From: Lepidodermella squamata
Lineage: Eukaryota; Animalia; Gastrotricha
Direction: 5' to 3'
Length of the DNA stretch: 64,000 bases
Assembly (NCBI GenBank): GCA_047495785.1
Contig: JBLDXI010000020.1
Coordinates: 1,736,001-1,800,000, forward strand
In this document: positions 3,108 to 63,735 of the stretch, one piece after another
How the letters are laid out: each line of letters opens with the position of its first letter
Position numbering within the stretch: the first letter of the stretch is position 1
Program-made: the position numbers and the translations under genes
Notes under the pieces: generated by a model
Told to the model about the DNA's origin: nothing
Seen by the model: the letters and a program-made list of their open reading frames with translations, nothing else
Database searches by the model: none

Positions 3108-3510
3108 ATGTCTAGACTCGCAGACATGCTACTAGCAATGGCACTTTGCATGACTTTGCTGTTCGACTCGTTCGAATCGAGTTACGTTGTCGCTCGAATG
3201 AGAACGCAGAAGAACGCCAATTCTAACGTAAACAAGCGGAACGACGAAGACTGCGGCGAAAATCCGCTCGATCGCTTCAATTATTTTCAAGGTAGTATCA
3301 AAATATATGCCGCCATTAATATTTTATTCCTGAATTTTTGCATCAGAGGCGAATGACGATGACCTGCTGCGGACGCTGCAATTCTCCATGCCTGGGAATA
3401 TTTTCAAAAATTTGAAACTTCACTATCTCATGTATACGGCATGCACGACGCAAAAATCGGCCGAAAAGCGCCAGTTTCACCTACCGCTCTCGTACAATAA
3501 AGAGGATTGA
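3108..3510 (+). CDS. Secreted orphan protein, CGxxP family member 1 (about 115 aa; exons 3108..3291, 3347..3510)
   Basis: Hydrophobic N-terminus; 55-nt GT-AG intron; spliced product ...NKRNDEDCGENPLDRFNYFQEANDDDLLRTLQFSMPGNIFKNLKLHYLMYTACTTQKSAEKR... Confidence 0.75.
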
Positions 3511-4041
3511 GTATTCCAGGACGTGACAAATTTAGCATTTAAATCTGATAAATATTGTTGCAATATAGACATTTCGCATCCGCTTTGAGTGTTAATTACG
3601 AAGAGGCGCCATTGGTAACATTACGATAAATAAAATCAGGTGTGTGGACATTACTTGTGGGTGTCTGGCGGGCTTTGTTATAGCCGTCGCGCTATTACGG
3701 CGATTAGCGCTTGAGGCGCGCCTTTCGCATATTTTTTTTTACGGCGCGCAAAAATTTGCGTGGGAGTTCGAATTCAACGGCGCGCGCGCCTACTCATCAA
3801 TACAAAGTGTACTTTTGCACAGATGAAAATGAAATTGCATCAAGTTTTTATTTCTCTTATGTTTGATTAATTTCTGTACCTAACCCCCGTAGAGCGAGGC
3901 AGGATATTAAATACAAAGATTGATTTTACAGCGCGCGCGCGCGCAGACCTTTGAAAGGAATTCGAATTGCGCACAGTTGCCTGCTTTTTAATTCCAATCG
4001 CTGAATAGCATTATCATTTTTTTCTACTCATCGCAATAGCT

Positions 4042-4428
4042 ATGACAAGCACAGTGACATATTTGGCCCTCGCTGTTGTCGCCCTTGCGACGCTGTTCGA
4101 AGTTTCGAATGCGAGCTTCTCACTCGCCCTGTCGCGCAACAACCCGCGACCCCGCCGCGCCCAGTTCAAACGCCCGCCGCCTATGACCCAGGACGATTGC
4201 GGACCTAACCCGCTCAGCATTTTGACCATGTCTCCTGATGGCGATACGGATAACAACATTGATGGTAATATTTCACCCTAAATTATTTTACTTAATATCC
4301 TCCTTAAAAATTTAGTTGACGACGAAACTGCAATTGCGTTCGCGAAGGAATATTTGCCGAAGGATTTTTTCAACATTTTGGTCGCACGCTACGAATCGTA
4401 CCGCAATTGCTTGCTACGCACGATGTAA
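4042..4428 (+). CDS. Secreted orphan protein, CGxxP family member 2 (about 111 aa; exons 4042..4264, 4316..4428)
   Basis: Signal peptide MTSTVTYLALAVVALATLFEVSNA; 51-nt phase-1 intron; DDCGPNPL...YLPKDFFNILVARYESYRNCLLRTM*. Confidence 0.75.
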
Positions 4429-5006
4429 CGCTTTTTGTAACCTGATATCGTCGCTATTACTCTATCTCTCACCTGTGTATACCGCAAAAAATCTGGAATT
4501 TCTGTATGCAAAAATTTATGATTATATAATTTTAGGCGACTTTTTTCTAAATTATTCTAGAATACTATAAATATCTCGTCAATTTATTTTCTGATCTGGA
4601 GAAAAATAAAACTTGATCAAAACTCATTAGTAAAACTTCACGTTGTCATCTCAAAAAATTGAGGTAAAATGTAAATAAAAAACAGGTCAAAAATGCACTA
4701 ACGGTAACGCGATACTTGTTGACTTGTTAGTAAATTGTGACGCATCATATCTGCCCCGTGATAGTATCCACCAACGTCAAGTGGAATTTCGGCGAAAAAT
4801 TAGACAGAAATAACAATCAAGCAGCGCGCGCCCACATGGCCTGTCGTATCGTAATTCACGTGAAACTGTCTTAAGTGCTGATCAAGATCAAAGATAATAG
4901 CGATAAATACAACAAATTAAGAACGCATCATTTGGCCAATTACCGATCGACATTATATAAAGCGCTTCAACAGCGGTAGATCGGGAATCTAGTTCGCTCG
5001 ACAATA

Positions 5007-5459
5007 ATGAATACGACTGCTATCTTTTTCGCCGCTATCGGAGTTACGGCTGTCAGACTTTCTGCTGGCGCTCAGAATTTCTCGAAGCCGGTTCCAATAC
5101 TCGCAAAACAACACCCTGTTCTTCAAAGAAAGTTGTCGCTTTTGGCCAACGCCGTGACGGCTCCAAATCGATGCGGTTTCGACCCTTTGGCGCATTTTCG
5201 GTTATTCCTAAAACTTCATCTTCTCCAAAACGCGGTAAACGCTCAATTCGAACAAATTCGAAGCGCTGATGATACGCAGGGTGCTCACAAACGCCGACGC
5301 CCCACTGCCCTACACCCGCTAGCTGTACGTGCTGCCGATAATAAGCCGCTCCATGCAAACAATGTCCTGAAGAAGGTCAAAAACATGGCTAGACACTTGG
5401 AGCTACGGCGTAGGAAATACCTCGACTGCATTTTCATGCTCGATTCTGACTACATATAG
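5007..5459 (+). CDS. Secreted orphan protein, CGxxP family member 3 (150 aa, single exon)
   Basis: Signal peptide; RCGFDPLAHF...RRRKYLDCIFMLDSDYI*; TATATAAA about 50 nt upstream. Confidence 0.8.
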   Translation: MNTTAIFFAAIGVTAVRLSAGAQNFSKPVPILAKQHPVLQRKLSLLANAVTAPNRCGFDPLAHFRLFLKLHLLQNAVNAQFEQIRSADDTQGAHKRRRPTALHPLAVRAADNKPLHANNVLKKVKNMARHLELRRRKYLDCIFMLDSDYI

Positions 5460-6188: not shown

Positions 6189-6795
6189 ATGATCATTTTT
6201 CTGGAACTAATGTTGGGAATTTCTCTCGGATTTCCATTTTATTTACAAGAAAGTGGAAATAAAATACCGTTTAGAGGCAATTCGCGGCTAGAATCCTTGG
6301 ACTTGGCTAGATCTAATACTCGTACGGGGGAAAGTGGAAGCCGGGCGAAATCCCGAGCTCGAAGCTTGACGTCCGATAACCCTTACATTGTTCAATGTGG
6401 CGACGATCCAATGGCTAGGTTGAGCCAGTTTTTCGCGTTAGTTTTTCATCGAGGATACTACAAGATTCCGGACTATGATATGACCCCGGATCAACTTTTC
6501 CAGCACTTGAATCGATTCGACAAAAGTGGTAAGTGTAATAAAAAAAAAACGAAGACCCGACTTCATAAAACTTGAGGGAATTGACCTTAACTATTTTAAT
6601 TAGATCAGATAGTCTAATATATGGCTGTTCTTATTAGATGACCTGCTTTGCTGTTTTATGATTTCAGGCAGAGCGAGGCGATTGTTGGCAAGAATCGAAC
6701 AGCATGCGCCAGGCTTGAGCCACATCGTCGCGGTCAGGCATCGAATGTATGTCCAATGTGTCTACAAACTTTCACTGGATGCTGACTACGTGTAA
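6189..6795 (+). CDS. Secreted orphan protein, CGxxP family member 4 (about 155 aa; exons 6189..6528, 6668..6795)
   Basis: ATG at 6189; donor G|GTAAGT and acceptor TTTCAG|; QCGDDPMARL...GRARRLLARIEQHAPGLSHIVAVRHRMYVQCVYKLSLDADYV*; close paralog of member 5. Confidence 0.8.
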
Positions 6796-8864: not shown

Positions 8865-9487
8865 ATGTTAGGAACTTCAAGAAATTTTATACTTCTCCTC
8901 AGCCTCTTCTCGCCATTCATCGCTCAAGGATCAGCTCTTAATGAATTCAAGAGCCGAAATCATCACCCTCCTTCAACCAAGGCACACAACAAGCTAACTA
9001 ACAAAATTACCTCAGAGAACAGAGTCTTGGCGAAAACTTTACGAATCGGCGATTCCAGCGAAGGTAGATCGAAAGCCTGGGCTCAAATAGCCCGGCAACA
9101 CAGCCGATTCCGGCCATCGGAACCTGCTGATTTCAAAATTGCAGGCCTGATCAATCCTTACGGCAAGCGATGTGGCGATGATCCGATGGCAAGGATAGGC
9201 CTTGTTTTCGGCATTCTATCACACAGGCAATGGAACCCGCACAAATCAATGACACCCGTTGAACTATTTCAACACTTGACATTATTCATGAATAGTGGTA
9301 TATTATGATTAATTTAATTTCGGGAAAAAATCAATTATTTTTTCTTTTAAATGTCCTAGATTTGGCTAAGCAAATGCTGATACATATCGAGCGACAAGCG
9401 CCCGGGCTTAGCCAACTCGTCGCCAACAGACATCGGATGTTCATCGATTGCGTCTACAAATTGTCTATAGACCCTGATTATATTTGA
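8865..9487 (+). CDS. Secreted orphan protein, CGxxP family member 5 (about 186 aa; exons 8865..9297, 9360..9487)
   Basis: Signal peptide; 62-nt phase-1 intron at the same position as in member 4; INPYGKRCGDDPMARI...DLAKQMLIHIERQAPGLSQLVANRHRMFIDCVYKLSIDPDYI*. Confidence 0.85.
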
Positions 9488-10125: not shown

Positions 10126-10668
10126 ATGAAGCCGGTCCTATTGACACTATTGGCCCTCGAGATGGCAGTTCTATGCAGTGCTTCGACGCGGCAGAAGGTA
10201 TTGACTGAACAACGGCTTCGAAACAATCACAAAATCGATCAAAACAGAGCAACAGTTCAGTTGCTGAATCGGCTGATGAAGGAGAAGCCAACAACACCGC
10301 CAGTTGTAACAACCCCGGCCCCAATTATTTTCGAAAATTCGCGATCGACCACTACTACAACCCCGCCACCGGTTACAACGGGTTTTTTCGTCCCAGAGGC
10401 GAAATACATCAGCCGACCGGGACATTTGTGTGGCGACGACCCAGTCGCTCGGCTTTGGGTGTTCCTTCTATTAGCCGCGAACAAACTCGGCGAGTTACCG
10501 ATGACGAACGGCCGCGTTGAAATGAACGAAGATACGATAAGTAAACTGATAACGAGCCTTCAGAAGGACAATCCATCTATGGCCATGGCTTTAACCATCC
10601 GCCGGCGCCAGTTTCTCAACTGCATGTACACCCAGGCTGTGGCTGCTGATTACATCAAGCGACGATAA
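10126..10668 (+). CDS. Secreted orphan protein, CGxxP family member 6 (180 aa, single exon) with Thr/Pro-rich linker
   Basis: Signal peptide; PTTPPVVTTP/STTTTTPPPVTT; HLCGDDPVARL...RRRQFLNCMYTQAVAADYIKRR*. Confidence 0.8.
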   Translation: MKPVLLTLLALEMAVLCSASTRQKVLTEQRLRNNHKIDQNRATVQLLNRLMKEKPTTPPVVTTPAPIIFENSRSTTTTTPPPVTTGFFVPEAKYISRPGHLCGDDPVARLWVFLLLAANKLGELPMTNGRVEMNEDTISKLITSLQKDNPSMAMALTIRRRQFLNCMYTQAVAADYIKRR

Positions 10669-11966: not shown

Positions 11967-13558
11967 ATGAAAAATTTCTTAAAATGTTTTCTGTTCCTTT
12001 TTGGAACGATCGCGGCGGTTCAATGTTGGCAGATGAGTGATGATCCGTTCCAGGACGAGCTACAACACTCGTTCAGTGCTTCACGCTTCACTGAATCTGA
12101 AGATGATCACGACGATCATGACGAACCATCCATGTTAGGAGCAGAACGTGCTCATGGTATTTAATTTTTCGAATTTTCGAAAGTCGAAATTGTGAAAATT
12201 TTCAAGGTTTATGGCTGGCCTCATCTCATGGTCACCACGCTTCATCGAACGAGGTCTTTGACCATGAAGAAAATAATGAAGAGGGCGAACACGAAGAAGT
12301 AAATTTAGCGAAAATTCGTGTTTTAAATTAAAAATTCGATTTTAGGATTCTTGGAGAGCTGATCCTAACGTACTATCGCGATTTCCTAAACTAGGCCAGG
12401 TAGCTGCGTTAGCTTTCAACAAAACCGACAAATCACTCATCGTATTTCATCGTGGATCTTCAATCTGGAACGAACAGTCAGTTTTTGGGAAAATTGTCCG
12501 TAAATTTGGAAGAAAATTCGATTTTTTTCAGCACCTTCGACGCTAATGGGACATTCCTCGGCACCAGCTCTGGTCCTATCCGTGAAGACACCATAATTTT
12601 CTATGATACTAAACGCGGTTTTGTAACGAAAAGCACCGGTAAAAACTTGTTCTACATGCCCCACGGCATGTCTATCGGGAAAAATGGCGCGCTTTGGGTG
12701 ACCGACGTCGCTTTGCATCAAGTTTTCCGCCTCGTCCCGTCCGGTAACGGCATGCGGCCTGAACTCATCCTAGGCGAAGCTTTCCAACAAGGCTCAGACG
12801 ACCGTCATTTTTGCAAGCCAACTGCCGTAGTCGAGGCGGCGAGTGATGGCTCGGTTTTCGTGGCTGATGGCTATTGCAACGCTCGAATCATGAAAATCAA
12901 CGGGAAAACTGGTGCTTTGATGGCAAAATTCGGTCGGCAGACCCCGGAATCGACCTGGATGGACGCACCTGAGCCAGGGACATTCTTCGTCCCGCATTCA
13001 CTTGCTCTTCTAGAAGGCAGCGATCTCATTTGCGTTGCCGATAGGGAAAATCGAAGGTAAAAATTAAAATTGAAATTAAATTTGAAAATTTTGAAAATTT
13101 TCGAAATTTTTTAGAATTCAATGCTTTAGCGCTGGGCTTCGAAACAACTCAGATACGGGTAGATTCATCGCCGAAATCAGCCATTCTGAATTTCGTGAAA
13201 TTTACGCCGTGAAATTTGCGAAGAAAGGTTTGATGATCCTTTTAGCTTTCGAATTTCAATGAAAATTCTGATTCCTTCGCAGCCAATGTTTTGCTGGCCT
13301 TATCCCGAGATTCCTATCAACAAGGCCCTGATACCTCCAATAAAATTTTCGCTATCGATGCTTCAACTGGACGGCCTTTCGAAGCAATCTCGATACCAGT
13401 TGGTCATTTGTTTTTTTTTTAAGAATTTTTTCAAAATATTTTCTTTGAAGGGTATGGTCAATGGTCATGATTCGGCGGTAGACGACGCGAGCGGTTTGAT
13501 AATCTACGCGTCTGAAATCGGCCCGAACCAAGTATGGCGAGTCTCTCGATCCGGTTGA
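11967..13558 (+). CDS. PAL: Monofunctional peptidyl-alpha-hydroxyglycine alpha-amidating lyase (PAL; NHL-repeat propeller), 7 exons
   Basis: Signal peptide. Spliced motifs LGQVAALA..IVFHRG..IW, FYMPHG, WVTDVALHQVF, HFCKPTAV, VADGYCNARI (catalytic Tyr), PHSLAL..ICVADRENRRIQCF (catalytic Arg), GHDSAV, EIGPNQVW. No PHM domain and no TM segment. Confidence 0.92.
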
Positions 13559-13741: not shown

Positions 13742-16700
13742 TTAGCCGTGATTTCTCAGTTCGAACGCCTCGGGATAATTTGCCTGGAGAAATTGGATTG
13801 CACCCGACACAGCTTGGAACAAAAATGGGCCTTGAGGCAGGCGAAGAATGGCGTAGAGTTGGGCCATCAGGCATCTCACAGCTTGAATTCGCGTCATTCC
13901 AAGCGGCATCCAGCTTAACGATACGATAAAATACCGAATCGAAACCTCGGCCAGCTGGACGTAGGGCAGGTTAAATTCGACCATAGTTTGAAGAATCGAT
14001 AAGCAGGTAGGTTCCAGGTCGAGATGGGTCAGATTCAGATGTTTGCCCAGCGCTGCCAGCTTGTTAAGCCGCGACGTGAGTCTGTAGCATATCGCCTTGA
14101 TTTGTTGTTTGAAAGAGGCCTGATTCGCCGAGTTCGAATGCTCCATTAACCGATTCCTCAAGTTTTCCGAGCATTTCCCGATATCTTCCCGATTCTCCAT
14201 AGCGACCTTTTTCAAAGCACCTCGGGTCCAAGCTGACGACGGGAAATCTTCATGTTCAAACATCTGTTGAAAAAATATTAAAAAAATTCGTTTTAAAAAC
14301 TAAATCCCACCTTAAAAATCTTCGCAACTTCTTCAAGTAACAGCGAGTTTCCAGATTTATCAATTATTTCAGTCAAGCTATTGAGGAGTTCGCTGAAGTA
14401 AGGATTAGGAGCACCCCTAATGTAAACTGAGGCATCGAGAAGCGGAACAAGTTGTAGGAGCAACGTCAGATTCTGAGCTGAATTCAGCTGATTTTGCGCC
14501 GAATTTTGATCCTGGTCGTCGTCGGGTTGCGGCGCTACGATAACGGCTGGAACCGTAACAGGATCCGTTGTAAAATGCCTCAGAATTCGAGGTAAGGATC
14601 TTGATAGGACAATACTCATATCCCGCCAATCCCGACCTTGGATTTCTTGAGAATAATGTTTTCTTGCTTCAGATAGAATTTCCGAGGCGCTAGCTACCAT
14701 TACCACAGCTATTGTAGTCGTGAGAATTCCCTGAAATATTGTATCATCACATCTGAATTAATGCTCACTTCCTCTAACCTCGCAACTGTAATCTCGTGAT
14801 GACATCAGGATAGTGACGAAAGCGTTCCAGTCCTTGAGAGGAGCGGCAATATGAACTAGGTTTTGAGTAAGTTTTTCAACGTTGAACAATCTGCCGTTGA
14901 ACTGCACGAAAGATAGAAATCGTTGAAGGTATGCCAAGTTCCCTTCAGCACCTTCATCTAGTTCGGATCCATCTGACTATAAACAATGTTATACAATAAA
15001 AATTATTTCGGTCAATCTTTTCATCGCCGAAATTTCAGCATTTTACTCAACTGGTATGGAATTTGTTTCCCAATTTTCATGTAAATTCGAGAATTTTCTT
15101 TAAAAGAAATCAAATGTTGCTCCCATAACCTGGACGATGAAAGACATGAAAGACAAGCAAAAATCCTATTAACCCTGAAAAGTTATTAACTCGCAGCCCA
15201 AAGTGTCCATGGCTAGTGATGTGTCCACGGTAATTAAAAGCTCTGGGTGTTATATCAATCAAAGTCAATAATAAACATGTGATATTGATAACCTAATTTA
15301 CTAGTTTCCGGACGTGTGAATTTATGGGACCAAATTTACGGCTTTATGGCTCCAATTTGAGACGCTTTTATTAAAATTTATTGTCCGTTTCGCAACCACT
15401 TAATTACAAACAATTTAATTTACCCCCGCTTTATTGCTCCAATTTAAGAAGACTTCATTAAAATGCATATTGTCCGTTTCGACAAACATTTGATCAAGCA
15501 ATTTGATTGCTTATTCCAATGTTTGACATTTCGGAGGGCTAGAATTGATGTTTCCTCAAAATTAATGGCATCGGTACTTAAAAACTCCGGGTGTTATGTC
15601 AATCAAAGTCAATAAAAATTTGATATTTGAAAACGTAATTTATAAGCAATTTATAATATATGCGGCTTTCCGGCTCCAATTTGAGTTAATATTATTACAA
15701 TTTATTGTCCGTTTCGCGGCTTTACAGCCACTTAATTAATTTGATAGCTTATGCAGATGTTTGACATTTCCCGAGGGCCAAATCTAACGATTCCTCGAAA
15801 CCAATAATCAATGGCCTATAGCAATTATCGTTATAGGCCACTTGATATAACCACTCGATCGTTTTACGACCGTTTTCATGGGGAATGTCTGTAGCTATGA
15901 TATCCCATTCGATTATCAAATGTTGAGTCTATCTCAATCAGGTACAGATCATAGTGTCCTGAAATTAGAGCTTATAATTACAAATGCGCCAGGTCTCATT
16001 TCTAAAAATAAATGTCACTCAAGTATCAATTTCAAAATAAAAAACAGACATTTTAGGTCAGATAACGTAATTTTACCTGAACTAATCTGAACTCGTTAGG
16101 ATAAGAGATGTCAAGATAGGAAAGCATAGGTCGGTGATTATCATCCTCATCCTGTTTGCGCTTCGATTCAACGTATCTAGCCAGACTCGCATGAATGCAT
16201 CGACAGGCAGCACGAGCAGACGCAGTTAGTTCGTCATTCGATGTGACGAATCGGCAAAGCGTGACGAGCAAATCATCATCATCGCCACTGCCGTCATAGC
16301 CGGTAATTGTCGGAATTATCGTAGCCAATATGTCCAGCGCTTCAGCTTTCGGTCGTTCGTCACTGGCCAGGAATGTTAATTCGATTAGCGGCGTTATCAA
16401 TTTTCGATAAAAATCAGCTCTTTCAGTTGAATCGAGCGAAATTTCAGCAATCGGTAATATGACGTCTTTCACTTTTGTTAGGACAAAACCTCGGAACCGG
16501 CTAAATTCTTCCCCCGTCACAATTGTTTTTAAAAAGTACGCGATGTCTGAATGTGTCAAGCAACGCCTCGGAAAAAGAGCCATCAGCTTACAGACCTTGA
16601 AAAACAGTTTTTATTAGCACCAATTAAATTCAAGCAATTAATTCTCACTTCGAGAACTAATTTGCATTTTGCAGCGTCATCAAGGTGGGCGAAATTTGCT

Positions 16701-17324: not shown

Positions 17325-18209
17325 ATGAGTAATTTTTCGAATTTCACCGGTAGCTATGTGTTGTCTTGCGGCCGGCTTCATCGAGTCAGGCCGATGCCAT
17401 TCATAACTGCCTATGTTTGGTCACTCTGCATCATCTCAGCCCTGGTTGTTCTACCTTATTTGTTGTATTCGATTCGCCGATTTATTCGGAAGGAAACGAT
17501 ACCTCATGATACGATAAGTTCCCACTGCGCAGATCCGCAAAGCCCAGCTCATAGATTTCTTCTCGTAATTTGCTGCTTTTTGTCATCATCCCTAACTTGT
17601 CTCTACGTCGAGGAGTATAATTCCTACGCAGCTCATGGCATACAGGAGGAATTATGGCGATTTATCCCGGATTTAATTGTCACAATTTTACTGCCACTTG
17701 TCGGAATTTTTCATACAGATGGCAATGGAACCATCGCGACGTACGACTGTTTCGGCGCGAAATTTTCCACAGTTTACAGCTCGATTATCCACGTGATAGT
17801 CGCCTTCAGCTTCCTGGTCATCAACTCGATCGGAAATTTGTACTGGGCCACGTACGAATTGGAAGATGACGATAAAGACAAACATTTTCTTATGACACTA
17901 AACGTTTTGTCAACAATTTTCACGTATTTTTTCCTTGTTGTTTTCACGCTGATAACTGCGATAAAACGAGCGAATCGAGCATTCGGCCGTCTGGCGTGGC
18001 GGCTGTGCCTCGCGGTTCGAGTTCGCAATAACGAGCCGGATAACCCAGGGTTTTACTATCGAGTCGCTCGGCCGCTTCGATTTGTGTGCTTCGCACTTGA
18101 ATTGCTCGCGTTTTTCTCAGTCATTCTAACTTCATCAGCTGAGACAATTAAACGCAACTGTCACGTCAAATTCACGCCTGAATGTCTCTTTATCGCAAAA
18201 TGTAGCTGA
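17325..18209 (+). CDS. Multi-pass (about 6 TM) membrane protein, probably Frag1/DRAM/Sfk1 (PGAP2/TMEM150/DRAM-like); intronless
   Basis: 294-aa ORF with about six hydrophobic segments; family-like motifs TISSHCADP..P..RF, LVGIFHT, IHVIVAFSF, ALELLAFF. Confidence 0.6.
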   Translation: MSNFSNFTGSYVLSCGRLHRVRPMPFITAYVWSLCIISALVVLPYLLYSIRRFIRKETIPHDTISSHCADPQSPAHRFLLVICCFLSSSLTCLYVEEYNSYAAHGIQEELWRFIPDLIVTILLPLVGIFHTDGNGTIATYDCFGAKFSTVYSSIIHVIVAFSFLVINSIGNLYWATYELEDDDKDKHFLMTLNVLSTIFTYFFLVVFTLITAIKRANRAFGRLAWRLCLAVRVRNNEPDNPGFYYRVARPLRFVCFALELLAFFSVILTSSAETIKRNCHVKFTPECLFIAKCS

Positions 18210-52583: not shown

Positions 52584-55500
52584 ATGAAAAACTGTGAGGT
52601 AAGTCTATGTCGACTCATCAAAATTATCCGCGTTAAATTTTTTGCTCAAGATTTGCTTGCACTCAGACAAGGCGATCGTCCACAGGTTCGGAATCGATAT
52701 CTGCGAAGCCTGCAAGGTAAATTTCATGTCCCCTAACATTCAGTTTTGTCTGATTTTATTTAGGAAAAAAATCCACCTTAATGAAAAAAGCATTAATTAA
52801 TTTTGATTATTTTCGTAGAAATTTTTCGTGCGCAATCGCTCGGTCGATGTTGAAACTTTGCCGTGCCGCAACGATGGCAAACAGACGTGCCTTATAAACG
52901 CCGATATTCAAAGGGCGCCATGCCCCCGCTGCCGGCTAGCAAAATGTTTCGCCCTTGGCATGAGCAATTTTTCCAAACACCGAAAATGTAAATAATTTGA
53001 TTTTTAGTGATTAATAGGGTGTGCCAAGTGCGCACCCTAAATTTAGGGTTCCAGCACTAAATTTGAGACTCCAGCACTAGATCCCCCCCTGAGTATGGTT
53101 TTTCGAATTTATAGTCTTCACTAGAATCTCAAATTTTTCGTTCTTATCGATTGACCTTCATATTACGCGAATTTTGCACTATGAGCGGTCAGTTTACGAA
53201 TTATACTTTATCCTATGGAGCCGATATCGATTCCAAGTATCGATTTTACAAATAAGTGATTTTCCCGATATCAGCCGTCTTGGAACCCAACATCGATAAT
53301 TTTTCTGCGTAGCTTAGAGCACCATGTAGCTAGAATAAAAATCCTAGGATCAGGGAAGGCACATGCATCGATAAAAAACCGAAAACACCGAAATCGCAAA
53401 GAATCTGATAAATGTAGTGCCATGACGCGCAAATTTAGTGCTGGAAATATTTTGACCCTAATTAGTATCTCCTATTTTTTTTGAAATTTAGATTCAGGAA
53501 AATTACCTGCTCCTAAGGACGATAATGAAAATGAAGCCGCCGGTGAATCTAGTACTCGTAAATCGTCGAAAGTCGCGAGGACACCGAAAAAGGACATATC
53601 GCCGAAAAGCGAGCCGAAAACGCCGGTCACCGAGGGAACATCGACTGATGTAAGCCCGATCGTTGCGTCATCATCGCCATCTTCGCCGCCAGCAGTAGTG
53701 AGACCCAGGGCGGAGTCGAATTCGGGCCAAAATCTAGCCAAAGAATTATTGTCAAGCGACGTTCCCCCATCGCCTGTTTGCCTATCTTCAGTTAAAGCTG
53801 AACGCTTTCTTCGCGGCGCTGTTGAATCAGCAGCTGAATTGGCTCCTTTGCAAAGCGTGAGAAAAAAATGAAAAAATGCGCACAAAATTTGTCGACTCTG
53901 TTACTAAATTTTTCAGCTTGAAGTTGACGAGAGCTTTCTGGACTCTCCGTTCTCCTTGAACGACCATCAAGAAGAAATGCTTATATGGATCAGTGGTATG
54001 AGAGCTTTCGAGTGGACCATACCATTTCTTGCCAATTTCTTTCAGTCTTTGCCAGGTATAACAGCAAATTGACATTTAATGAATTTACTGTTATTTTTTC
54101 CTTAGATTTTGGCTGCCTATCTCGGGTCGAACAGTGGCATTGCGTGAATAGATCGCTTAGCTCAATTTCTCTCGCTCAAATTGCGCTTCATTTTCGGACA
54201 AAACCCGGCTTCACGCCATTTTACGGATTTTCTGCGAGGCTTCGAGAACGCTGGCTCAAGTACTTTCCGTACTATCGAGTTTGCATGATTTTGTTTTACA
54301 ATTTCTTCAATTTTTTGGCTATATTTCTCAGAACACTGACGTTGGCACCGAGTATCTCGCAACTTTTTTCAACAATTGGAACATGTCTTTCGTTGAATTT
54401 GCTTTCATTTGCGCTCTCTTCGTAGTCCGAGGTGAGTCAAATTTGTCATTTTTCGAATCGTGGGATAAAAATTGATGCCACTCGGACATTATTTTAATTT
54501 GGGCAATTTTCTCGTGGGCCAGTAGAGTGTCTTGCCCAGTTATTTCCGCTGACATGTTGTCATAAACACCCAAGTTGAAAATGATGAAATTTATAATGCC
54601 TAATTTTTCGCTAATTTATTTTGACCTAGGTTAATAAAACGAGGGTACGTGATAATACAGTGTGTCCGTCAAATAATATGAGGCTATTTATAGTCCAAAA
54701 GCAACAGCAAGCGTGGCGCGTGCCAGATCTGGTGTCTCATTTTTTTCATGAGATGCAAAAAATAATACGTCAATGAAATCTAAAGCTTTATTTACTACTG
54801 CTAGTTAAAATTTGTGTGCATCGGCTAGTGTTGATGGTTAAACTTTCTTCGTCTTAATTCTTTCAGGTGATAGAGAAGGTGATGTTCTGACCATCATGAA
54901 TGCTCATATTTTCCTCTTAACGAGCCGCGCCTTTAAAAAATTATCTCAACTATCAGGTTCATCTCCGTCATCATCATCTTCTCCCTCAGCCGTTTCAGTT
55001 TTTTGTTTGGCAAGGGCCATTTTGAATTCCGCCATGGCCAGTTTTACAAACCGCTTTTTTGGAATCGGGTTTCCCCTTTTTCGCGTACATCGACTTGTCC
55101 ATCGACTTGGGTCTTCAACAGCCGCGGGACATTTTCTAAATTTTGTTTCGTAATCTTGCATGTCTAATTTAATAACTGCCGTTGAAGCATAAAATGCAAC
55201 AAATGCAACAAATGCAATGAAAGCAACTAAAGCAGTTTCCATTACGACCTGGTATTCTGTTTGAAATAAGTTCCGCGTTTTGAAATAAAGGGGGAACGTC
55301 GCTTTCGCCAATTTGTGTAGCATCCGGGGCGCTATCGGCTAACCGTTATATACGTGAATTTCACATACCCGCAAGAATACGTCCAATGGCTAGTACAAAC
55401 AGTTTTAACTGAATTGGATCAGAAAATTTGCTATTAAATCGCAGTTAAATGGTTATATTTTTTCCAGATATTAGGTTGACATTGTTGCGCGTTTGATCTT

Positions 55501-57507
55501 ATTGCATGAATATTCAGGGCAACTCGTTGTCCCCAAAACTTTAGTAATGTACAAAGCTCGCAGGTGAAAATCCCGAAGCTAATGCTTTCGTTCCGAAGAA
55601 TGTTCTTTATCTTGATTAAATAATACAAATTTTGGCGGAGCAATAATTGATATTATTCCAGCAACGAACAACACTAGCTGTACTATCATTCAGTGCTGCG
55701 TTTTTTTTGCCTCGTGCACGACTCGTGAACAGGCGCAATTAAAATGCTATATTTAGGCTCATATTATTTGACGGACACACTGTATTTGCCGTTATCCTCT
55801 GGTTTTGAGACACGCATTTGATAGGATTGTTAGGATCCGCAAGATAAGTATTATTATGAGTTGTCACCCGAATTGGCATGTTTGGGAGTTTTATATAAAC
55901 CCTGACATGCAATCACCTGTTACTGGAAATTAATTTTAGGTTGATGTTAATAAAATGTCAGATCAAATCGATGCCCTAATGTCAATTAGGCAGTTTATTT
56001 TCTTGTGTCCTGAAAACGGATAGATCTCGATGTTTTGTTCAATTTATGAAAAATAGTTTTTTCAATACTGAGTAGAAATTCCTAAATTCCGCCGCTGCGA
56101 CCTAACTTCGGCCACCGTTTGCCTAGGCGAATTTGACCGCATCCAATTTTAGGTAACTGGATGACGTGGCCGAAGTTCGGTTCTCCTCCGGCCAGTTGAC
56201 TAAAAAATCATAGTAAAATCGTCTTGACTCGCGGAAACCGGCATTTGATAGCCCGAGAACTCCTCAATAACATGTTTTGGCCAATTTTCCCCTAGAAATT
56301 CTCCTAGCTGGCAAAGTAGGAATAACCCAAAAAGTGGCCGAATTTAAAGCAGGATTCTCTAGGTCAGCGGATTGATAGGTAAGTCGTTTCGGAAACAAAA
56401 AAATGATCGATTCATCAGCAATTGATTTTCAAATAAATTTCAAAATTTCGTTGTCTTGTCGCGTTTGCTGTTTTGACGGTCTGCCGGTTGAAAGCCCAGG
56501 CTTCTATAATATGAAAAAATATATCAACTTTCCGCCACAATTTAAGAATACCTTGTTGAGGAAATAGGTTGAGGAAAGAGGTTCAAAAATATTTCCCGGG
56601 GGATACGAAGAGTAGGATACACAAGCCAAAGGGCTAATATATACTCCCGAGTTACACCAGACTAGAAAACCAAATTTTTAGATTTTCCTGCCATTAATAC
56701 CATGCATAGAACCCTACGAGCCAAGAAAAACGTCGTTGTCCGTTTCTCAAAATTCGATCTCAGTGTCGAGAAAAAACATTAAACGTGATTGGGTGTTTTT
56801 GAGGATTTCGAAGGAGCGATAAATGTCTCGTTGGCAATAATTGATACCTGCGCCATTTGGCATGTCAAACGCTGAAACTTGGCAGGATGACGTAACAGAG
56901 GTTAATAAAAAATCTCCTAAACTGTGTTTCGGGAATTGTCGACCCAGCACTCGAACCAGGCTCTGGGCTTTGAACCAGCCTATTTTTATCAGCTTTCATT
57001 CAACCGGGTTTTTCGGGCTGTAGTCCATAGTTTTATAAGACGGCATTAGCACCATCGAAATCAGCGTCGAATTTCGCAAATTTCCCGCTCAAAAACCCTC
57101 TTTGTAAAGTTCACCGTTTCCAAGATATGATTTTTCAGCGTAATATCATTTATTATGACGCATTATTTATTATTTCAGATGAAGGAGATGTAAGTTCAGC
57201 CAATTCATCGTTGGCCGAAATTCGGGCGGGTCTAGTCGATGCTTTGCAAATCTACCTGCGAAACGTCTCCGGTTGCGATCCGCTCCACGTTGAAGCTTGC
57301 ATGTCTCGCATATTCGAAGTTGTCCGCGTACTTTCGGCCCTGCAAAACGAAACATTTTCGGCAATCATTCAAGTGGCGATGGCTCGGCCCGAGCTTCAAA
57401 CCGAATCGCAGCAGTGGGCTTCGATTTATGAAGAGAAAATTAAGCAGAATAATTCGGCCGAAAACCAGCAGGACGTTCAGAGTGAAAAACTAGATGATAA
57501 AAGCTGA
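52584..57507 (+). CDS. Nuclear hormone receptor B (about 451 aa; exons 52584..52598, 52651..52716, 52819..52987, 53492..53856, 53917..54055, 54106..54278, 54332..54431, 57179..57507)
   Basis: Hand-spliced MKNCE|ICLHSDKAIVHRFGIDICEACK|KFFVRNR..CRNDGKQTC..CPRCRLAKCFALGM; LBD FFQSLP|DFGCLSRVEQ..KYFPYYR|..NWNMSFVEFAFI..; all seven introns GT-AG with consistent phase; colinear with receptor A. Mostly missed by the ORF track. Confidence 0.88.
53035..53460. repeat. Intronic interspersed element; an inverted homolog of its left end lies at about 63062-63122
   Basis: TGCCAAGTGCGCACCCTAAATTTAGGGTTCCAGCACTAAATTTG matches the reverse complement of CAAATTTAGTGCTGGAACCCTGAGTTTAGGGTGCCCACTTGGCA; internal inverted AAATTTAGTGCTGGAA at about 53431. 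Confidence 0.6.
54658..55782 (-). mobile_element. Internally deleted pogo/Tc1-mariner superfamily transposon in the last intron of receptor B
   Basis: TA|CAGTGTGTCCGTCAAATAATATGAG ... CTCATATTATTTGACGGACACACTG|TA (25-bp perfect TIR). Internal ORF 54946..55323 has RKCPAAVEDPSRW..RKRGNPIPKKRFVKLA, resembling a degenerate CENP-B/pogo HTH; no DDE domain seen. Confidence 0.8.
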
Positions 57508-57888
57508 GAATATTTTTGCTCATGTGTGATGTTTATCTGGTGAAAAATTAGTTTACTCTCGATAAAACAAACAAAAAACCGGCTGAACCTAACTATTTAC
57601 TGGCAACAATCCTGTTTAACTTGTCTTTATTGTCGGCTGAAATTTCGATATATAATGCTGTGAAATTATTTGTTGTTTTGTAAACAAAAAATTGGCCATA
57701 TAGTTCAGCATAAAAAGTACGATCATATTATAAACTTTTTTTTTGCAAAATTTTTCGACGAGTGAGCAGGTAAAATATTTATTGTGCCTTATAATCGTGG
57801 AAAGTAATAACATTTAGACCAGGGTTATTCGAGAGGAAGGAGGGGAAAATTATAGAATTATTTTGCTAAAATTGAACGCTGAAATTCT

Positions 57889-58257
57889 TCATAGAGCTAC
57901 GGGCCTCTGACGTAATTTGTTGATCGCCTCGATGATAGTTTTATCGTCGACCTCAGCACTGAGATCATCGATTTCATCGCTGCCTTCTTCAGCGCGTAAT
58001 AAATCGATGATTTGCTGCTGCGATTCGGGTGATAATTGGTCGAATTCACCGATGTCAGCCTCGTCGAACAGCTCATCTCCCAATTCGTCCTCGTCGCTGT
58101 ACGACAGCAATTCGTTGAAAAACGCGTCTTCCAACTCGGGCCGAGTCAATTTCGACAAGTCAGCCGCCGCTTCGTCGACCTGCTTACCGCTGATTTCCTC
58201 AGCTGCCGCGATGGAGGCAACAAAAATGGCGGCGAAAATTACGAAAAACTTGTTCAT
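57889..58257 (-). CDS. Secreted highly acidic small protein (122 aa)
   Basis: Clear signal peptide MNKFFVIFAAIFVASIAAA; D/E-rich body; C-terminal TIIEAINKLR similar to TIIEALNERY of its neighbour. Confidence 0.8.
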   Translation of the reverse strand: MNKFFVIFAAIFVASIAAAEEISGKQVDEAAADLSKLTRPELEDAFFNELLSYSDEDELGDELFDEADIGEFDQLSPESQQQIIDLLRAEEGSDEIDDLSAEVDDKTIIEAINKLRQRPVAL

Positions 58258-58293
58258 TATTTTATTTATTCTAAAAATCTTAAGGTAGAATTT

Positions 58294-58626
58294 TTATTTA
58301 TAAAGTTTATAGCGTTCGTTGAGTGCTTCTATAATAGTGATTGGTTTAGAGCCTGGCTGATAAAAAGTTTTGTCCTTATTGCTACCAAATCGCAGGAGTA
58401 AACGTTCGAAAGCATCGCGAGTCCGCTGCTGGTTCTTTTTATTGGGACGGGGCGGTGATGACGAGCCAGTTCGCCGCTCCACACTTGCGTAGATTTCGGC
58501 CGATGACGCTATTGCCGCTTGATCCGGCAGATTTACCACGGTGGCGGGCTCCGCAGGGCACGTGCACGAAGATGCGACGGCTAAAGCCGTGGCGAGTAGG
58601 AATGCCGACGCTGTAATTGACACCAT
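58294..58626 (-). CDS. Secreted peptide-precursor-like protein (110 aa) with LLLRFG motif
   Basis: Signal peptide; basic sites (RR, KK); FERLLLRFGSNK; ends TIIEALNERYKLYK*. Confidence 0.75.
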   Translation of the reverse strand: MVSITASAFLLATALAVASSCTCPAEPATVVNLPDQAAIASSAEIYASVERRTGSSSPPRPNKKNQQRTRDAFERLLLRFGSNKDKTFYQPGSKPITIIEALNERYKLYK

Positions 58627-58946: not shown

Positions 58947-59420
58947 TCAGCGTCCGAACAATGAGTAACGTTGACCAAGCAGTTGCTTGACAGCCTCTTT
59001 GTTGCCGCCCTCTGACAAGGCTGATGATCCGGGTTTTGGCATGTTGATAAGCCTGTACAGCCTATTGATGACCGCGTCTTCGCTAACAGCGCTCTTCTTG
59101 ATCGTTTTCTCTTTTTCGACATGTTTCTCCTGTTCATCTGGTTTCAAGTGATGACTGCCAGAGCGGAGGTACACAATTCGCCGGTTTTGCTCAGCCGGCG
59201 CGGCGGCTAGAATTTCGTGAAAGCTCCGCGGGGTGTAGGCCTCGTTAGACATCAAAATTTCATTAGCGTCGTTGTCGAAAAGGTCGATTGCTCGCCGGTA
59301 TCTCGCTAGTGATGCCCCGTGCGACAGGTGTGACAGTGAAGAGACGGTGAAGAAAATCATGAGCCAGAAAGCTGAAATCAGCCGGCAGCTTTCTTTCGCG
59401 TCAAAACCCAACATGGCCAT
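58947..59420 (-). CDS. Secreted peptide precursor ending in -QRYSLF-GR (amidation signal)
   Basis: Signal peptide, furin-type RYRR site, internal VYLRSG, C-terminal G-R-stop. Confidence 0.8.
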   Translation of the reverse strand: MAMLGFDAKESCRLISAFWLMIFFTVSSLSHLSHGASLARYRRAIDLFDNDANEILMSNEAYTPRSFHEILAAAPAEQNRRIVYLRSGSHHLKPDEQEKHVEKEKTIKKSAVSEDAVINRLYRLINMPKPGSSALSEGGNKEAVKQLLGQRYSLFGR

Positions 59421-60274
59421 CACTGATAGCTAAAAGTTTAACAAGGTAGGTATCTAAATCAGGGAATGACAACGAATTATTCTATATAATCCCGAAAAAA
59501 TCAGCGGAGGCGTGGCTTAAAAGGTCATTTTTCCTCACAAATTACAAATCGCCTATGAAAGAGAGCAACGATCATTGATAACAGAATTCATGTGTAGTGT
59601 GACAGTGTGACCTTCGATTACCACTGATGAGTTTTAGAAGCGTCTGTTATAGTATCTATTTTTAGATTTTTCAAAATTATAGACAAACAACGTCTTACCT
59701 GCTATGACGTATTTTAATCAAAGATACTTACGGGGATATGATTGCGGATTTTTTCCCCCACTCCAGTGGATAAATTTACCGCGAAGATTTAGCTCTAAAG
59801 CTAATGGAGTAAAATCAATAAAATCTTTAATTTTTAACAAGCTGCATTTCGAAGAATATTTTCGTCAAATATTTACAGTAGGAAAGAGGACTGAAAAGTC
59901 TGCTAACGAAAGGAAAACAGAATTTTCGCGTTTTGGACATGAATTTTCATTCGTTATGAAGCCCCTAGCAGCCTGTTTTAATACATTCACGTGATTCAAA
60001 CTCTTTTCAGAGTAGGCGAGAGGTCAAATCAAAGTTCGTGAATTATTAAAATAAATCGAAAAATCCGTGTTTCACCTGCTGTAAAGCGGAAGCGTGGTTC
60101 CAATCGAAAACGACTCACGGCACTAATGGCTCTATTTATCGCTAAAAATGATTCATGATTTTCTACACCAACGAACAATTTTTATTTTTAAAATTTTTGC
60201 ACCAGGTTTTCCACTGGACATGATTATAAATAATATGGTATTTTAGTCGCGCATTATTCCTCGTGTTGTCGAAT

Positions 60275-60673
60275 TCATATTTTATACGATCGACCACCCT
60301 TGCTCATCGCAAGAGCCGAGCGCCATCGATGAACCGGCTCAGCCAGGCGTGGAATAAAGGGTGCTTGATCTCGCTCTTCATTCAGCTTAATTTCGCCCGA
60401 ATTTTCAAGAGCAGACGATTCGGTGGGCGATTCAGGGGTCATAATTGCCTCGCCAGGCTTCACGCGATTATTCAAAAATTTCGATGGCGTATAAACGGGT
60501 TTCGCGAATGAAATTGCCAGTGATTCGTCGTCCGCCGAATTTTCATCGCCGTAAAAATCGAATTTACCATCTCGGGTCTGGTGATCGGCAGCGTAATTGA
60601 AAATTGAAGCCATGTCCTGGGCTAAATTCGGCGCAATTATTGCGGCGAAAAAGATGACAATACTGAGATTCAT
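60275..60673 (-). CDS. Secreted peptide-precursor-like protein (132 aa), divergent member of the right-hand cluster
   Basis: Signal peptide MNLSIVIFFAAIIAPNLA; KPVYTPSKF motif shared with neighbours; TATATAAAGGGG about 55 nt upstream. Confidence 0.75.
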   Translation of the reverse strand: MNLSIVIFFAAIIAPNLAQDMASIFNYAADHQTRDGKFDFYGDENSADDESLAISFAKPVYTPSKFLNNRVKPGEAIMTPESPTESSALENSGEIKLNEERDQAPFIPRLAEPVHRWRSALAMSKGGRSYKI

Positions 60674-61156
60674 GATAAGCGAAAAATTATTTCAACTAAA
60701 ATTAACTAAAATTTAACAGCCCCTTTATATAACGATCAAAACAAAAACAAGGTAATCAAAACCGCGATTTATTAAAAAAAAAAATAGAGTGGATTAGGAT
60801 TCGGCGCACGTGGTTCATGGCCTGGACGATGTTTACTTGCGGTCCGCGGTGATAATTATGAGAGAAATTTTTAATCACCTTTCGGTCATATGGACAGGCC
60901 TACTTAAGAGTCCCAGATGCAATCTTGATGACGTTTTACTGGTACGGATTCCGGATGCAATTTTTAGGGAGTGTTAATTTCCTTGTCGGGTATATTAGCT
61001 GCTGTTTTTAAGAAAAATGCAGCCGTTAAAAATTCTTGAATACAATATTAAGTAGGGCAACAATTAAGCAGACCTCCCACGTTCCAATTTTATTAATTCC
61101 CACTCAAACACATAATTTCAATTGATGAAATTGCGAGGTTGAAAAAAGACAATTAT

Positions 61157-61513
61157 TCACCCGAAAACAGCCCAGGTGCGACTCATCAATTTCTTAACGT
61201 CATTCGGGTCGATTTCAATGTCATTTTTCGAGATGGGCCTCTTCAGCTTGAGTTCGATCTTTTTATTAGCTGCGTCATTGATCGATTTCGGCGATACCGC
61301 TGCTCCAAATCGAAGATAGGAAGAAATTGGTTTATCCGCCGATTTTACTTCTTTGAATCTTGATGGCGTGATAATAGGCGGTTGATTTGGGTCCATAGCC
61401 AAATTTTCTGAACTGGCAGGATCGCCATGAATTTCGATAACAATCGCTGGTTGTTGGCCAAAGAATTGAGGAAATTGATAAAATAAAACGATCAAGCAAT
61501 AAAAATTGTTCAT
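61157..61513 (-). CDS. Secreted AVF-G family precursor 1 (118 aa)
   Basis: Hydrophobic N-terminus; IITPSRF; SSYLRFG; ends DVKKLMSRTWAVFG*. Confidence 0.8.
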   Translation of the reverse strand: MNNFYCLIVLFYQFPQFFGQQPAIVIEIHGDPASSENLAMDPNQPPIITPSRFKEVKSADKPISSYLRFGAAVSPKSINDAANKKIELKLKRPISKNDIEIDPNDVKKLMSRTWAVFG

Positions 61514-61642
61514 TATTCTCCATAAAAATTGAATTTTTTTATTTCTCTGCTTTTATTTGAGTCGCGTGAGACCGCCATTCATTTATCGAGGATTTTTACA
61601 AATTATTTTATACACGCAAAATAAAAATAAAATTGCTGATTT

Positions 61643-62050
61643 TTAGCCGAAAACTGCGAAAGTACGACGAGCGGCTTTTTTCAACTCTTCATCGTTTGAA
61701 GATTTTCGGTTTTTCGCTTTTTTCAATAGCGACTGGTCCTGGATCAGAGTCTCTAGAATCTTCTTAAAAGCGTCCTCCTGAGATTTTTCCTTGTTATTGT
61801 CGTATGGCTTTGTTGTTACGAAATTGCCGTGCCGAAGCAGGGCTGGTTTTCTGCCTTCAGCCGCGGCTTTTGATCTTGAGGGTGATACAACTCTGTCTTG
61901 TTTAGGTTTGATTAAATAGTCGCCTCGGTCGAAGAATCCATCCTCCAAGGAATCACTCGGTAGTTCCAAGTAAAGAGGAATTTGTTCTGAAAATTCAACA
62001 AAAAATCCCAGCAGCAAGATAGCCGAAATGCTCACGAATTTGAATATCAT
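61643..62050 (-). CDS. Secreted AVF-G family precursor 2 (135 aa)
   Basis: Signal peptide; GFFDRGDYLIKPK; VVSPSR; ALLRHG; ends ELKKAARRTFAVFG*. Confidence 0.85.
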   Translation of the reverse strand: MIFKFVSISAILLLGFFVEFSEQIPLYLELPSDSLEDGFFDRGDYLIKPKQDRVVSPSRSKAAAEGRKPALLRHGNFVTTKPYDNNKEKSQEDAFKKILETLIQDQSLLKKAKNRKSSNDEELKKAARRTFAVFG

Positions 62051-63339
62051 TCTGTATAAAAATTATTGGAAATCTACCGAAAAAAAATAAAAAATGAGTT
62101 GCATAAATATACGACGAAAATTGGTGTTTTCGAGTCTAATTTTAGTCGGGGAGCTTAACTGCATTAATCCGAGGTGGCTTAATCATCGCTTAAAAACCTC
62201 AGAATAATTGCCTTCTTGAAATGGCTGTCGTCATCAGAAAAGCTTATATGAGTCGACAAATCACATTTTTGCCCGAATATCAACAGGAATAATTGGACAT
62301 TGGCGTAGCCGCAGTGACGCAAAAGGGAGAAAAACATTTCAAGTAAAAGATTTTCGTTCATCCCGATATAATCGACAAAAATCACGGCTTTGATCATCTG
62401 AATAGATGATGGGCCGTTATTTGATGAAATTCATATAAGATGAACGACTCTCAATATCGCAATTGAGTACGATGCTTACTATTTGTTATTCGGTGATGGA
62501 GAAAGTGATCGATAAGGATATAAGTGCCATGAGCAATAGAAACAGGTTCGAATATGAAGTGGCCGTGATGTTGAAGTAGCTTTTAAAACACGACATTTTC
62601 CTCTTAATTCAACGGAAGAATGAACGTTTGTTATGCGTTCAAAATCGGCTATATTTATCAGAGGGGGAGGAGGGGGTTCCAATTTCATCATGTGGCAAAC
62701 TCAGATTTCTCCAGTAAACTTCCTATAAAAATAGGGTCCCAATAGATTAAGCGGAAACGATTCTTCTATAAATGAAAGATAAACTTTTTGAACCTGGAGT
62801 TTTTACACGGGCCCTAAGCTATTTCGAACAAATTATTGATGTTTAGGCTCCAAAACGGTTAATATATCTGAAAATCACTGATTTGTAAAATCGATATTGA
62901 CTCTGCACTCACTCCTAAACTAGCCAAAAATCGATCATTTGAAATCAATTCAGCGAGCGCGGGAAATCCTATGTCCATTTGGTACTAGCATAAGGCATGA
63001 TAGCATTAAAAATTTAGATTCTAATGATGACATGAAACTTGAAAACCCTTATTTTGGGGAAGTCTAGTGCCAGAGTCCCAAATTTAGTGCTGGAACCCTG
63101 AGTTTAGGGTGCCCACTTGGCAAAACCAAATTGCAAGTTCCCGTAAAAGAGGCCGATCAAGATACCGATAAGCAATGTAGTAGCCAGCCTTCATAATTTA
63201 TTTCCAATCGATTGCCACAAAATTGCCAGACTTCGAGCTATATTTGGCACACCGAGTTGCAACAATTTATTTTTCAACAATAAAAAATGGAAATGTTATG
63301 TACAATTAATGACGTATTAGAAGCAATAAAAAGGTTACG

Positions 63340-63735
63340 CTAGCCGAATACAGCGAATCTGTGGCTGGTCAGTTCCTTGAGATTCTTCTCCATTACAGCG
63401 GGCTTCTTAGCATTTCCAGAGGGCGAATTAGAGTCTGCCGATAATAGCTGCTCTATAGCAGCAGATACCAACTCTTCCTTAGCTTGTTTGGGGTTCGATG
63501 GATGAGGATTCTTTCGGTCCTTTTGCTTGCCTTTGTTCTGAAATCGCAAAGGTGAAAAAATGGCCGTCGGTTTTGGGCTGATTAGCAATTCGCCGCGGTC
63601 TAAAAACCCGGATGACTCATGCGATTGATCATTGACGCTACGCTGTGCTAATTCAATAGCTGGCATTTGCAGTGTAAAATCGAACAGCACCACGCCAAAA
63701 ACACCTATCACCACGATATTTGGCAAGCAGTTCAT
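63340..63735 (-). CDS. Secreted AVF-G family precursor 3 (131 aa)
   Basis: Signal peptide; GFLDRGELLISPKP; IFSPLRF; ends NLKELTSHRFAVFG*. Confidence 0.85.
   Translation of the reverse strand: MNCLPNIVVIGVFGVVLFDFTLQMPAIELAQRSVNDQSHESSGFLDRGELLISPKPTAIFSPLRFQNKGKQKDRKNPHPSNPKQAKEELVSAAIEQLLSADSNSPSGNAKKPAVMEKNLKELTSHRFAVFG

Follow-up and report, generated by a model that had tools for sequence, protein, structure and literature searches.

Within 64,000 nucleotides of the gastrotrich Lepidodermella squamata (the window: positions 1736001-1800000 of contig C20, read on the forward strand) lie two arrays of small secreted-type peptide genes, a stand-alone peptidylamidoglycolate lyase (PAL) gene and two nuclear receptor genes, NR1 and NR2. 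We conclude, with a probability of roughly 0.68, that these are several independent, individually ordinary neighbouring features and not one functional unit. An earlier reading made from the sequence alone (the sequence-only reading) had seen here a co-regulated gland or neuroendocrine locus, with part of its peptide processing and regulation encoded nearby. The ingredients of that proposal survived: the arrays of secretory precursors, the enrichment for amidation signals, the intact PAL and the atypical receptors are all present. What gained no support was the step that made nearby processing and regulation into one co-regulated locus; in line with the caveat that the linkage could be coincidental, the components look like chance neighbours. 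Co-regulation, if true, would be a rare animal case of substrates, processing enzyme and regulators encoded together, and the tests made here give it no support.

The peptide families are new but their kind is familiar: they are lineage-specific secreted or amidated peptide precursors, and the PAL is ordinary. For two orphan secreted families the gene models are now corrected, in a phylum for which neuropeptide data hardly exist, and the amidation enzymes of the genome are inventoried completely: PHM, PAL and PAM share a single contig. The genome comprises 121.2 Mb in 151 contigs, of which C20 accounts for 3.26 Mb; the GC content of the window is ~40%. Genes are named below by their leftmost position in the window (Table 1). 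Spliced models (PAL, four two-exon genes of the left array and both receptors) were searched exon by exon.

The PAL gene has seven exons (11967-12156, 12207-12298, 12346-12476, 12532-13056, 13115-13227, 13283-13398 and 13451-13558) and six introns of 47-58 nt, and its coding sum of 1275 nt is in frame. The ORF (open reading frame) at 12452-13060 matched the NHL family (PF01436) at 50.4 bits, and aligned with the rat PAL structure 3FVZ over 176 residues (E = 1.2e-50). The PHG, DGYCN, PHS and ADRE motifs align with rat PAL; we take them, from the roles of these motifs in the rat enzyme, to hold the zinc-binding His and the catalytic Tyr and Arg. With its active-site motifs present, the lyase is predicted to be intact. 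Exon 1 encodes a hydrophobic, signal-peptide-like N-terminus. The last exon reads G-H-D where rat PAL and one homologue read P-H-D; searched alone against the PDB, this exon is too short and gave no match. The third intron (12477-12531) requires a GTCAGT donor, and a more obvious GT 4 bases downstream breaks the frame; the resulting junction at 12477 reads W-N-E-H-T-F-D, compared with W-N-E-K-S-F-D in a nematode PAL.

We found 350 homologues of this protein, and those that are named are peptidylamidoglycolate lyases. The homologues, 45-52% identical, are stand-alone lyases from arthropods, nematodes, molluscs and flatworms, and the gene is thus, as judged by alignment, an ordinary conserved stand-alone orthologue and not a recent local paralogue; a single unnamed match at 76% identity is probably from a related species. 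It shares the NHL beta-propeller and the same motifs with Drosophila Pal1 and Pal2, C. elegans F21F3.1/pgal-1 and the PAL domain of rat PAM (3FVZ), and, like other invertebrate stand-alone PALs, it has an N-terminal signal peptide and no PHM domain. It differs from known PALs in a ~90-residue acidic, His-rich N-terminal extension (exons 1-2), and is otherwise ordinary. The description of a stand-alone PAL directly after the left array was correct: the gene has its own signal-peptide exon and begins 1.3 kb past the last gene of that array. The idea that it might be an extra, locus-specific paralogue did not hold, as it is a conserved orthologue and the other amidation genes lie elsewhere on C20.

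Queried genome-wide, PAL matched one more place, C20:2592925-2593326, at 47% identity. The surrounding region (C20:2591.4-2594.8 kb) encodes a signal peptide with a PHM N-domain, the end of a PHM C-domain fused to NHL/PAL, and a transmembrane exon; by this domain order the gene at ~2.593 Mb is a membrane-bound bifunctional PAM. A stand-alone PHM, whose best PDB matches are PHM structures, lies at C20 ~122-123 kb. The PAM and the stand-alone PHM are 0.85 Mb and 1.6 Mb from PAL, respectively, and genome-wide searches with PF01082 and PF03712 gave no match within the window, in agreement with the original statement that PHM lies outside it. The soluble PAL would perform the second amidation step for the whole peptidome, in trans, alongside the stand-alone PHM and the membrane PAM. 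Two other sets of copper-monooxygenase matches were rejected as PHM: the strongest match, on contig C12, belongs to a DOMON-bearing, DBH/TBH-like gene, and ~30 copies on contig C13 are Temptin_C-monooxygenase fusions closer to DBH. The latter, Temptin_C joined to a DBH-like copper monooxygenase, stand in tandem at C13 ~1.99-2.37 Mb.

The array that adjoins PAL barely uses amidation. As first described, it consists of six genes with a CGxxP motif; all are plus-strand ORFs with a hydrophobic N-terminus. These starts and the motif were confirmed, and the ends given for 3108, 4042, 6189 and 8865 were not: they are intronic read-through, because each of these genes has a GT-AG intron and a second exon. 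All four introns are in phase 1 and at the same position of the domain, and each second exon carries the second Cys motif; with those of PAL, the introns read in genes of the window measure 47-139 nt. Homology is strongest between 6189 and 8865 (E = 3e-13), followed by 10126 and 5007 (E = 0.004 over 97 residues), and is weaker for other pairs. The exon-2 end of 6189 and 8865, R-H-R-M-[FY]-x-x-C ... D-Y-[IV], is matched in the intronless 5007 and 10126 by RRR-x-[FY]-L-[DN]-C ... DYI. Searched genome-wide, a profile of the CGxxP domain recovered only the six genes, plus one doubtful match at E = 0.25. An amidation-type site was found in one of the six: in 8865, NPY-G-KR immediately precedes the CG. 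In 6189, the paralogue closest to it, NPY is present and G-KR is missing.

What the CGxxP proteins resemble is a different kind of product. AlphaFold2 predicted three helices in the C-terminal domain of the 10126 protein (residues 106-177), with a pLDDT of 74-90 in most 10-residue blocks. Searches of this fold against the PDB (Foldseek) and the ESM Atlas returned only generic helical bundles, at TM <0.4. The family had no Pfam match, and the protein atlas gave nothing usable. For evidence of expression, an exact-protein look-up for 10126 and 5007 found no record. The family profile found no credible relative among 1.84 billion representative proteins; two matches of 19-24 residues to the Arg-rich stretch were regarded as spurious. 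The product would enter the secretory pathway by a putative signal peptide, followed by a variable pro-region with basic sites and, at its end, a mostly helical domain of 45-95 residues with one Cys at either end. We regard it as a probable secreted, ligand-like protein, stapled by a disulfide, that would need no amidation. It resembles the small disulfide-stapled helical secreted ligands (helical cytokine-like or pheromone-like) in being secreted, in its pro-region with basic sites, in its compact predicted three-helix domain and in the Cys near each end. The likeness is one of resemblance only: no sequence or fold match links it to any described family, and we do not claim membership.

The amidation-rich array starts 44 kb from PAL, and its products could use PAL, PHM and PAM in trans. 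Within the window it holds the seven genes counted in the sequence-only reading; all are minus-strand ORFs, and five of them are of one family. Paralogy is clear among 61157, 61643 and 63340 (E = 6e-7 to 9e-11), and 58947 and 60275 carry the aligned family blocks [ST]-P-x-[RKS]-F and ...L-R-x-G. A profile of these five AVF-Gly genes retrieved only the same five from the genome. Their best conserved segment is the C-terminal R-x-[FWY]-[AS]-[VL]-F-G, which is lost in 60275; the upstream cleavage site varies: 61643 has RR, 61157 has KK a further four residues upstream, and 63340 and 58947 have only one R each. All the Gly amidation signals of the sequence-only reading were verified: AVFG three times, YSLFGR, and the internal NPYGKR of gene 8865.

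The array does not stop at the edge of the window. On the same strand it runs ~20.7 kb further, through 16 more intronless one-peptide genes: four GVDFG genes, two that end in ...LVF-G, eight in W/F-x6-W-G-basic, and two singletons. In total it holds at least 23 same-strand genes over ~27 kb, with its initial 6 kb in the window; a Gly or Gly-basic terminus is found in 16 of these 23 (four of the seven in the window and 12 downstream). Of the eight W-amide genes that were aligned, seven carry W-x6-W followed by Gly and basic residues, and the eighth has Phe for the first Trp; searched genome-wide, their profile found the eight array genes and one more, at C20:2134012-2134254 (2.134 Mb). We also counted ORFs of 60-220 amino acids with a signal-peptide-like start and a G or G-basic end: there are 15 in the 26.3 kb of the right array and its extension, compared with none in 144 kb of other sequence. 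By this count, amidation signals are strongly enriched in the right array.

Transcription of the right array was seen in read-derived contigs, which were examined over ~6 kb there. They come from three runs: X1 (2015), whose kind is recorded only as "RNA?", a guess; X3 (2014), whose kind is unrecorded; and X2 (2024), which is even over the whole examined stretch and is probably DNA. The X1 and X3 contigs are confined to the gene bodies of six of the seven genes, with zero depth in the intergenic bins checked. At 60159 one X1 contig runs out into 15 non-templated T, at 30 nt beyond a minus-strand AATAAA, and this loose end is the poly(A) tail of gene 60275.

The pre-propeptides of this array would lose their signal peptide, be trimmed by convertase and carboxypeptidase, and then pass to PHM and PAL; the predicted products are ...AVF-NH2, ...YSLF-NH2, ...LVF-NH2 and W(x6)W-NH2. 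With neuropeptide precursors, among them those of the MIP/allatostatin-B W(x6)W-amides, the array genes share a signal peptide, nearby basic residues, a terminal Gly or Gly-basic, and conservation at the peptide end. They differ in that each of many intronless tandem genes encodes a single peptide, in place of several copies per precursor; the AVF-Gly genes differ further in the inconsistency of their upstream cleavage site among paralogues and in the lack of a homologue outside the genome. MIP/allatostatin-B precursors usually hold several peptide copies. In the W-amide genes we found no such repetition within a precursor, each having a single C-terminal peptide. A literature search on VF-amide peptides and gastrotrich neuropeptides returned no description of the present families. 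From their precursor features, the right-array peptides most likely act as neuropeptide- or hormone-like ligands, and the predicted amidated peptides (of AVF-NH2 type and, next door, of W(x6)W-NH2 type) are open to peptidomics and to receptor de-orphanisation in gastrotrichs.

A neuropeptide-like look can mislead, as in the nlp/cnc antimicrobial clusters of C. elegans, whose peptides resemble neuropeptide precursors. The arrays could accordingly be exocrine or defensive secretions (adhesive-gland, pharyngeal, cuticular, antimicrobial or water-borne pheromone products) that are neuropeptide-like in looks only. Such secretions would fit tandem families that are large, diverge fast, are restricted to one locus and have a single peptide in each gene, precursors of classical neuropeptides being conserved and multi-copy more often; they would also fit the failure to find homologues outside the genome (61643 had none among 5.8 billion proteins, and the CGxxP profile none among the representatives), the small, helical, folded proteins predicted for the CGxxP genes, and the acidic gene 57889, whose X1 contig depth figure is the highest, a measure that cannot rank genes by expression. 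Against this stand the eight array genes that end in W/F-x6-W-Gly-basic, a signature typical of MIP/allatostatin-B, and the diverged AVF-Gly paralogues, in which the C-terminal peptide is the best conserved part, as expected of receptor ligands. We regard an exocrine or defensive role as unlikely. Host-directed effectors, also mentioned in the sequence-only reading, are unlikely if the organism is a free-living gastrotrich.

Two atypical, divergently transcribed nuclear receptors do lie between the arrays, as had been noted, with starts 24 kb apart. In NR1, the first zinc finger is C-x2-C-x13-C-x2-C, with a first ATG at 28539, a stop at 22596 and an intron after CEACK, the next exon starting KFF; its two zf-C4 (PF00105) exons scored 15.1 and 20.0 bits, neither reaching the cut-off by itself, and its Hormone_recep domain (PF00104) scored 31 bits against a cut-off of 23.5. 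NR2 has the same EACKK P-box and intron position, a first finger of C-x2-C-x15-C-x2-C, and a zf-C4 score of 30.6 bits (cut-off 21.1) over its second DNA-binding domain (DBD) exon at 52819-52992. Between the first two Cys of finger 2, the D-box loop, there are 29 residues in NR1 and 7 in NR2; the canonical EGCKG P-box and five-residue D-box are absent in both. The putative exons for the ligand-binding domain (LBD) of NR2 had no Pfam match, and BLASTP gave no alignment of its C-terminal exon to the NR1 LBD; an LBD there is plausible by eye. NR2 starts three residues before the first zinc-binding Cys and has no A/B domain. By these domains, both are atypical members of the nuclear receptor superfamily, and not non-members.

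Lineage-specific expansions of nuclear receptors are known, the supplementary nuclear receptors of nematodes being one. With such expansions NR1 and NR2 share a C4 DBD, followed by a ligand-binding-type domain that is putative in NR2, and an intron after the CK of the P-box, and the divergent P-box and many paralogues are found likewise here. They differ in having EACKK in place of EGCKG; in addition, NR1 has a D-box loop of 29 residues where five are usual, and NR2 has a first finger with 15 residues, not 13, and an LBD that Pfam does not recognise. Genome-wide, we scored at least 153 zf-C4 matches from 438 candidates, and because the family is so large, two receptors in a 64-kb window are unremarkable.

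We found nothing upstream of the peptide genes that would tie them together or to the receptors. Among 4724 7-mers tested over the upstream regions of 29 peptide genes, none was significantly shared by the 29 after correction; the best, at p = 3e-5, is AT-rich. The AGGTCA half-site is not enriched there, with 8 observed and 5.2 expected. TATA-like boxes, in contrast to their expectation of 10.6, were observed 25 times, and because they are enriched upstream, individual promoters for each array gene are suggested. The acceptor-like motif TTTTAG also stands upstream of many array genes, up to 40 nt ahead of the ATG and in some cases only a few nt from it (10 observed, 4.8 expected; for example at 58258-58290, 59421-59445 and 60674-60720), a placement that fits 5'UTR splicing or spliced-leader trans-splicing.

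An integrated locus, in which the PAL of the window would serve only the Gly-extended precursors beside it and NR1 and NR2 would control the arrays, has to be set against these findings. Its components are physically close, the 16 Gly-ended products of the right array call for amidation, the genome has only one other gene that encodes PAL, and NR2 ends 380 bp from the first right-array gene. Yet processing encoded nearby gained no support: the PAL is a deeply conserved stand-alone orthologue, the array beside it has one amidation signal among six genes, and the array rich in such signals is the distant one. Nor did regulation encoded nearby, with receptors that start far apart, come from a family with many matches, and leave no common motif or half-site enrichment upstream. 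The stretch is also not contiguous: it is interrupted by a housekeeping cohesin SA gene, an ORF for a membrane protein and a repeat-rich spacer of 24 kb. We consider such an integrated locus improbable, and infer that its parts are regulated independently.

Several observations nevertheless weigh against a reading of independent neighbours. The ~81 kb from 3.1 kb in the window to 20.7 kb past it concentrate ~30 small secreted-protein genes of at least seven locus-restricted families, plus a secretory enzyme, and among these ~30 genes there are only four or five unrelated ones; this concentration could reflect a shared chromatin or cell-type domain. PHM, PAL and PAM all lie on C20, 3.26 Mb of a 121-Mb genome; this may be a trace of origin by duplication or fission within a chromosome. 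The evidence itself has limits that count on the same side: signal peptides were called by a hydrophobicity heuristic and no trained predictor, the 144-kb background of the amidation count was partly chosen around other genes, and RNA-like support is limited to the right array, with none for the left. In its strongest form, the opposing view would make the ~81 kb a single peptidergic chromatin domain of one secretory or neuroendocrine cell type, whose ~30 precursors, soluble PAL and two dedicated receptors would be switched on together, as an animal equivalent of a biosynthetic gene cluster, here one for amidated peptides. We think this very improbable, and keep to the reading of independent, individually ordinary neighbours.

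It might also be asked whether some of the 14 small ORFs are chance ORFs or decayed copies. RNA-like contigs cover 58294 only thinly, and it has no paralogue; 60275 no longer has the C-terminal end of its family; the six-Cys gene shares with the left array the lack of RNA-like contigs; and the middle of the window yields ~10 spurious ORFs with a signal-peptide-like start per 46 kb. The left array, however, shows paralogy with conserved Cys motifs and intron phase, the six-Cys tail has a paralogue, and RNA-like contigs cover all right-array genes but one. That any of the 14 is a non-gene is, on this evidence, most improbable.

Table 1. Genes and other features of the window, with positions counted from its first nucleotide.
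Feature	Position	Strand	Details
CGxxP gene 1	3108-3510	+	Exons 3108-3291, 3347-3510; phase-1 intron 55 nt; weakly similar to gene 2
CGxxP gene 2	4042-4428	+	Exons 4042-4264, 4316-4428; phase-1 intron 51 nt; second Cys in exon 2
CGxxP gene 3	5007-5459	+	Single exon; TATA-like box ~60 nt upstream; similar to 10126
CGxxP gene 4	6189-6795	+	Exons 6189-6528, 6668-6795; phase-1 intron 139 nt, GTAAGT donor
CGxxP gene 5	8865-9487	+	Exons 8865-9297, 9360-9487; phase-1 intron 62 nt; NPY-G-KR
CGxxP gene 6	10126-10668	+	Single exon, 180 residues; Thr/Pro-rich linker, then predicted C-terminal three-helix domain
Stand-alone PAL	11967-13558	+	Seven exons; NHL Pfam match; rat PAL 3FVZ match
Cohesin SA/SCC3 (STAG-like), partial model	13742-16583	-	PF24571 HEAT_SCC3-SA, 36.1 bits, ORF 14293-14706; flanking minus-strand ORFs
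Hydrophobic ORF of 294 residues, multi-pass membrane-like	17325-18209	+	No family match
Six-Cys secreted peptide gene	20103-20426	+	Tail C-x9-CC-x6-CC-x-C, then KRKN
NR1	22596-28539	-	DBD ~28539-28430 and 28290-28080; Gln-rich hinge and LBD start 25455-26579; LBD end 22596-23255
Gene-poor, repeat-rich spacer	28800-52500		Between receptor starts; dispersed direct and inverted repeats
NR2	52584-57507	+	5-codon first exon, 52-nt intron; hinge 53485-53868; putative LBD exons to 57507
Acidic secreted-type protein of 122 residues, singleton	57889-58257	-	X1 contig 57828-58225, depth 317; X3 contig
Secreted-type ORF of 110 residues, singleton, weakly supported	58294-58626	-	Thin X1 coverage only
Divergent AVF-Gly member, end YSLF-G-R	58947-59423	-	X1 and X3 contigs
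Divergent AVF-Gly member without C-terminal F-G, internal G-G-R	60275-60673	-	X1 and X3 contigs; poly(A) site ~60159
AVF-Gly gene, end TWAVF-G	61157-61513	-	X1 and X3 contigs
AVF-Gly gene, end RR-TFAVF-G	61643-62050	-	X1 contigs
AVF-Gly gene, end HR-FAVF-G	63340-63735	-	X1 depth in bins 63200-63599

The remaining features of the window lie mostly between the arrays. The cohesin SA gene is convergent with PAL, with 184 bp between the gene ends. The small gene with six Cys, described in the sequence-only reading, was recovered, and its Cys-rich tail has a paralogue at C17:1920806-1920910 (56% identity, E = 1.5e-5); from this alignment the two form a small, undescribed Cys-rich peptide family. 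Feature-space leads to hepcidin or conotoxin-like peptides for this gene all scored <0.9, below threshold, and were not used. Rfam and tRNA scans of the 64-kb window gave no match.

The longest ORFs of the spacer had no match in Pfam, and we recognised no coding sequence in it. Copies resembling miniature inverted-repeat transposable elements occur at 39043-43987 and 51194-51610, in direct and inverted orientation, built around TAGCGGAACCAAATTTGC sub-repeats.

Two further observations concern the right array. The acidic gene 57889, with its high X1 figure, has no relatives in the array and may encode a different kind of secretory product. Between two of the array genes, at 62860-63125, X2 contigs pile up to ~2900x, and both X1 and X2 show a form that skips ~182 nt (62896-63079), which points to a dispersed repeat with an insertion/deletion polymorphism.

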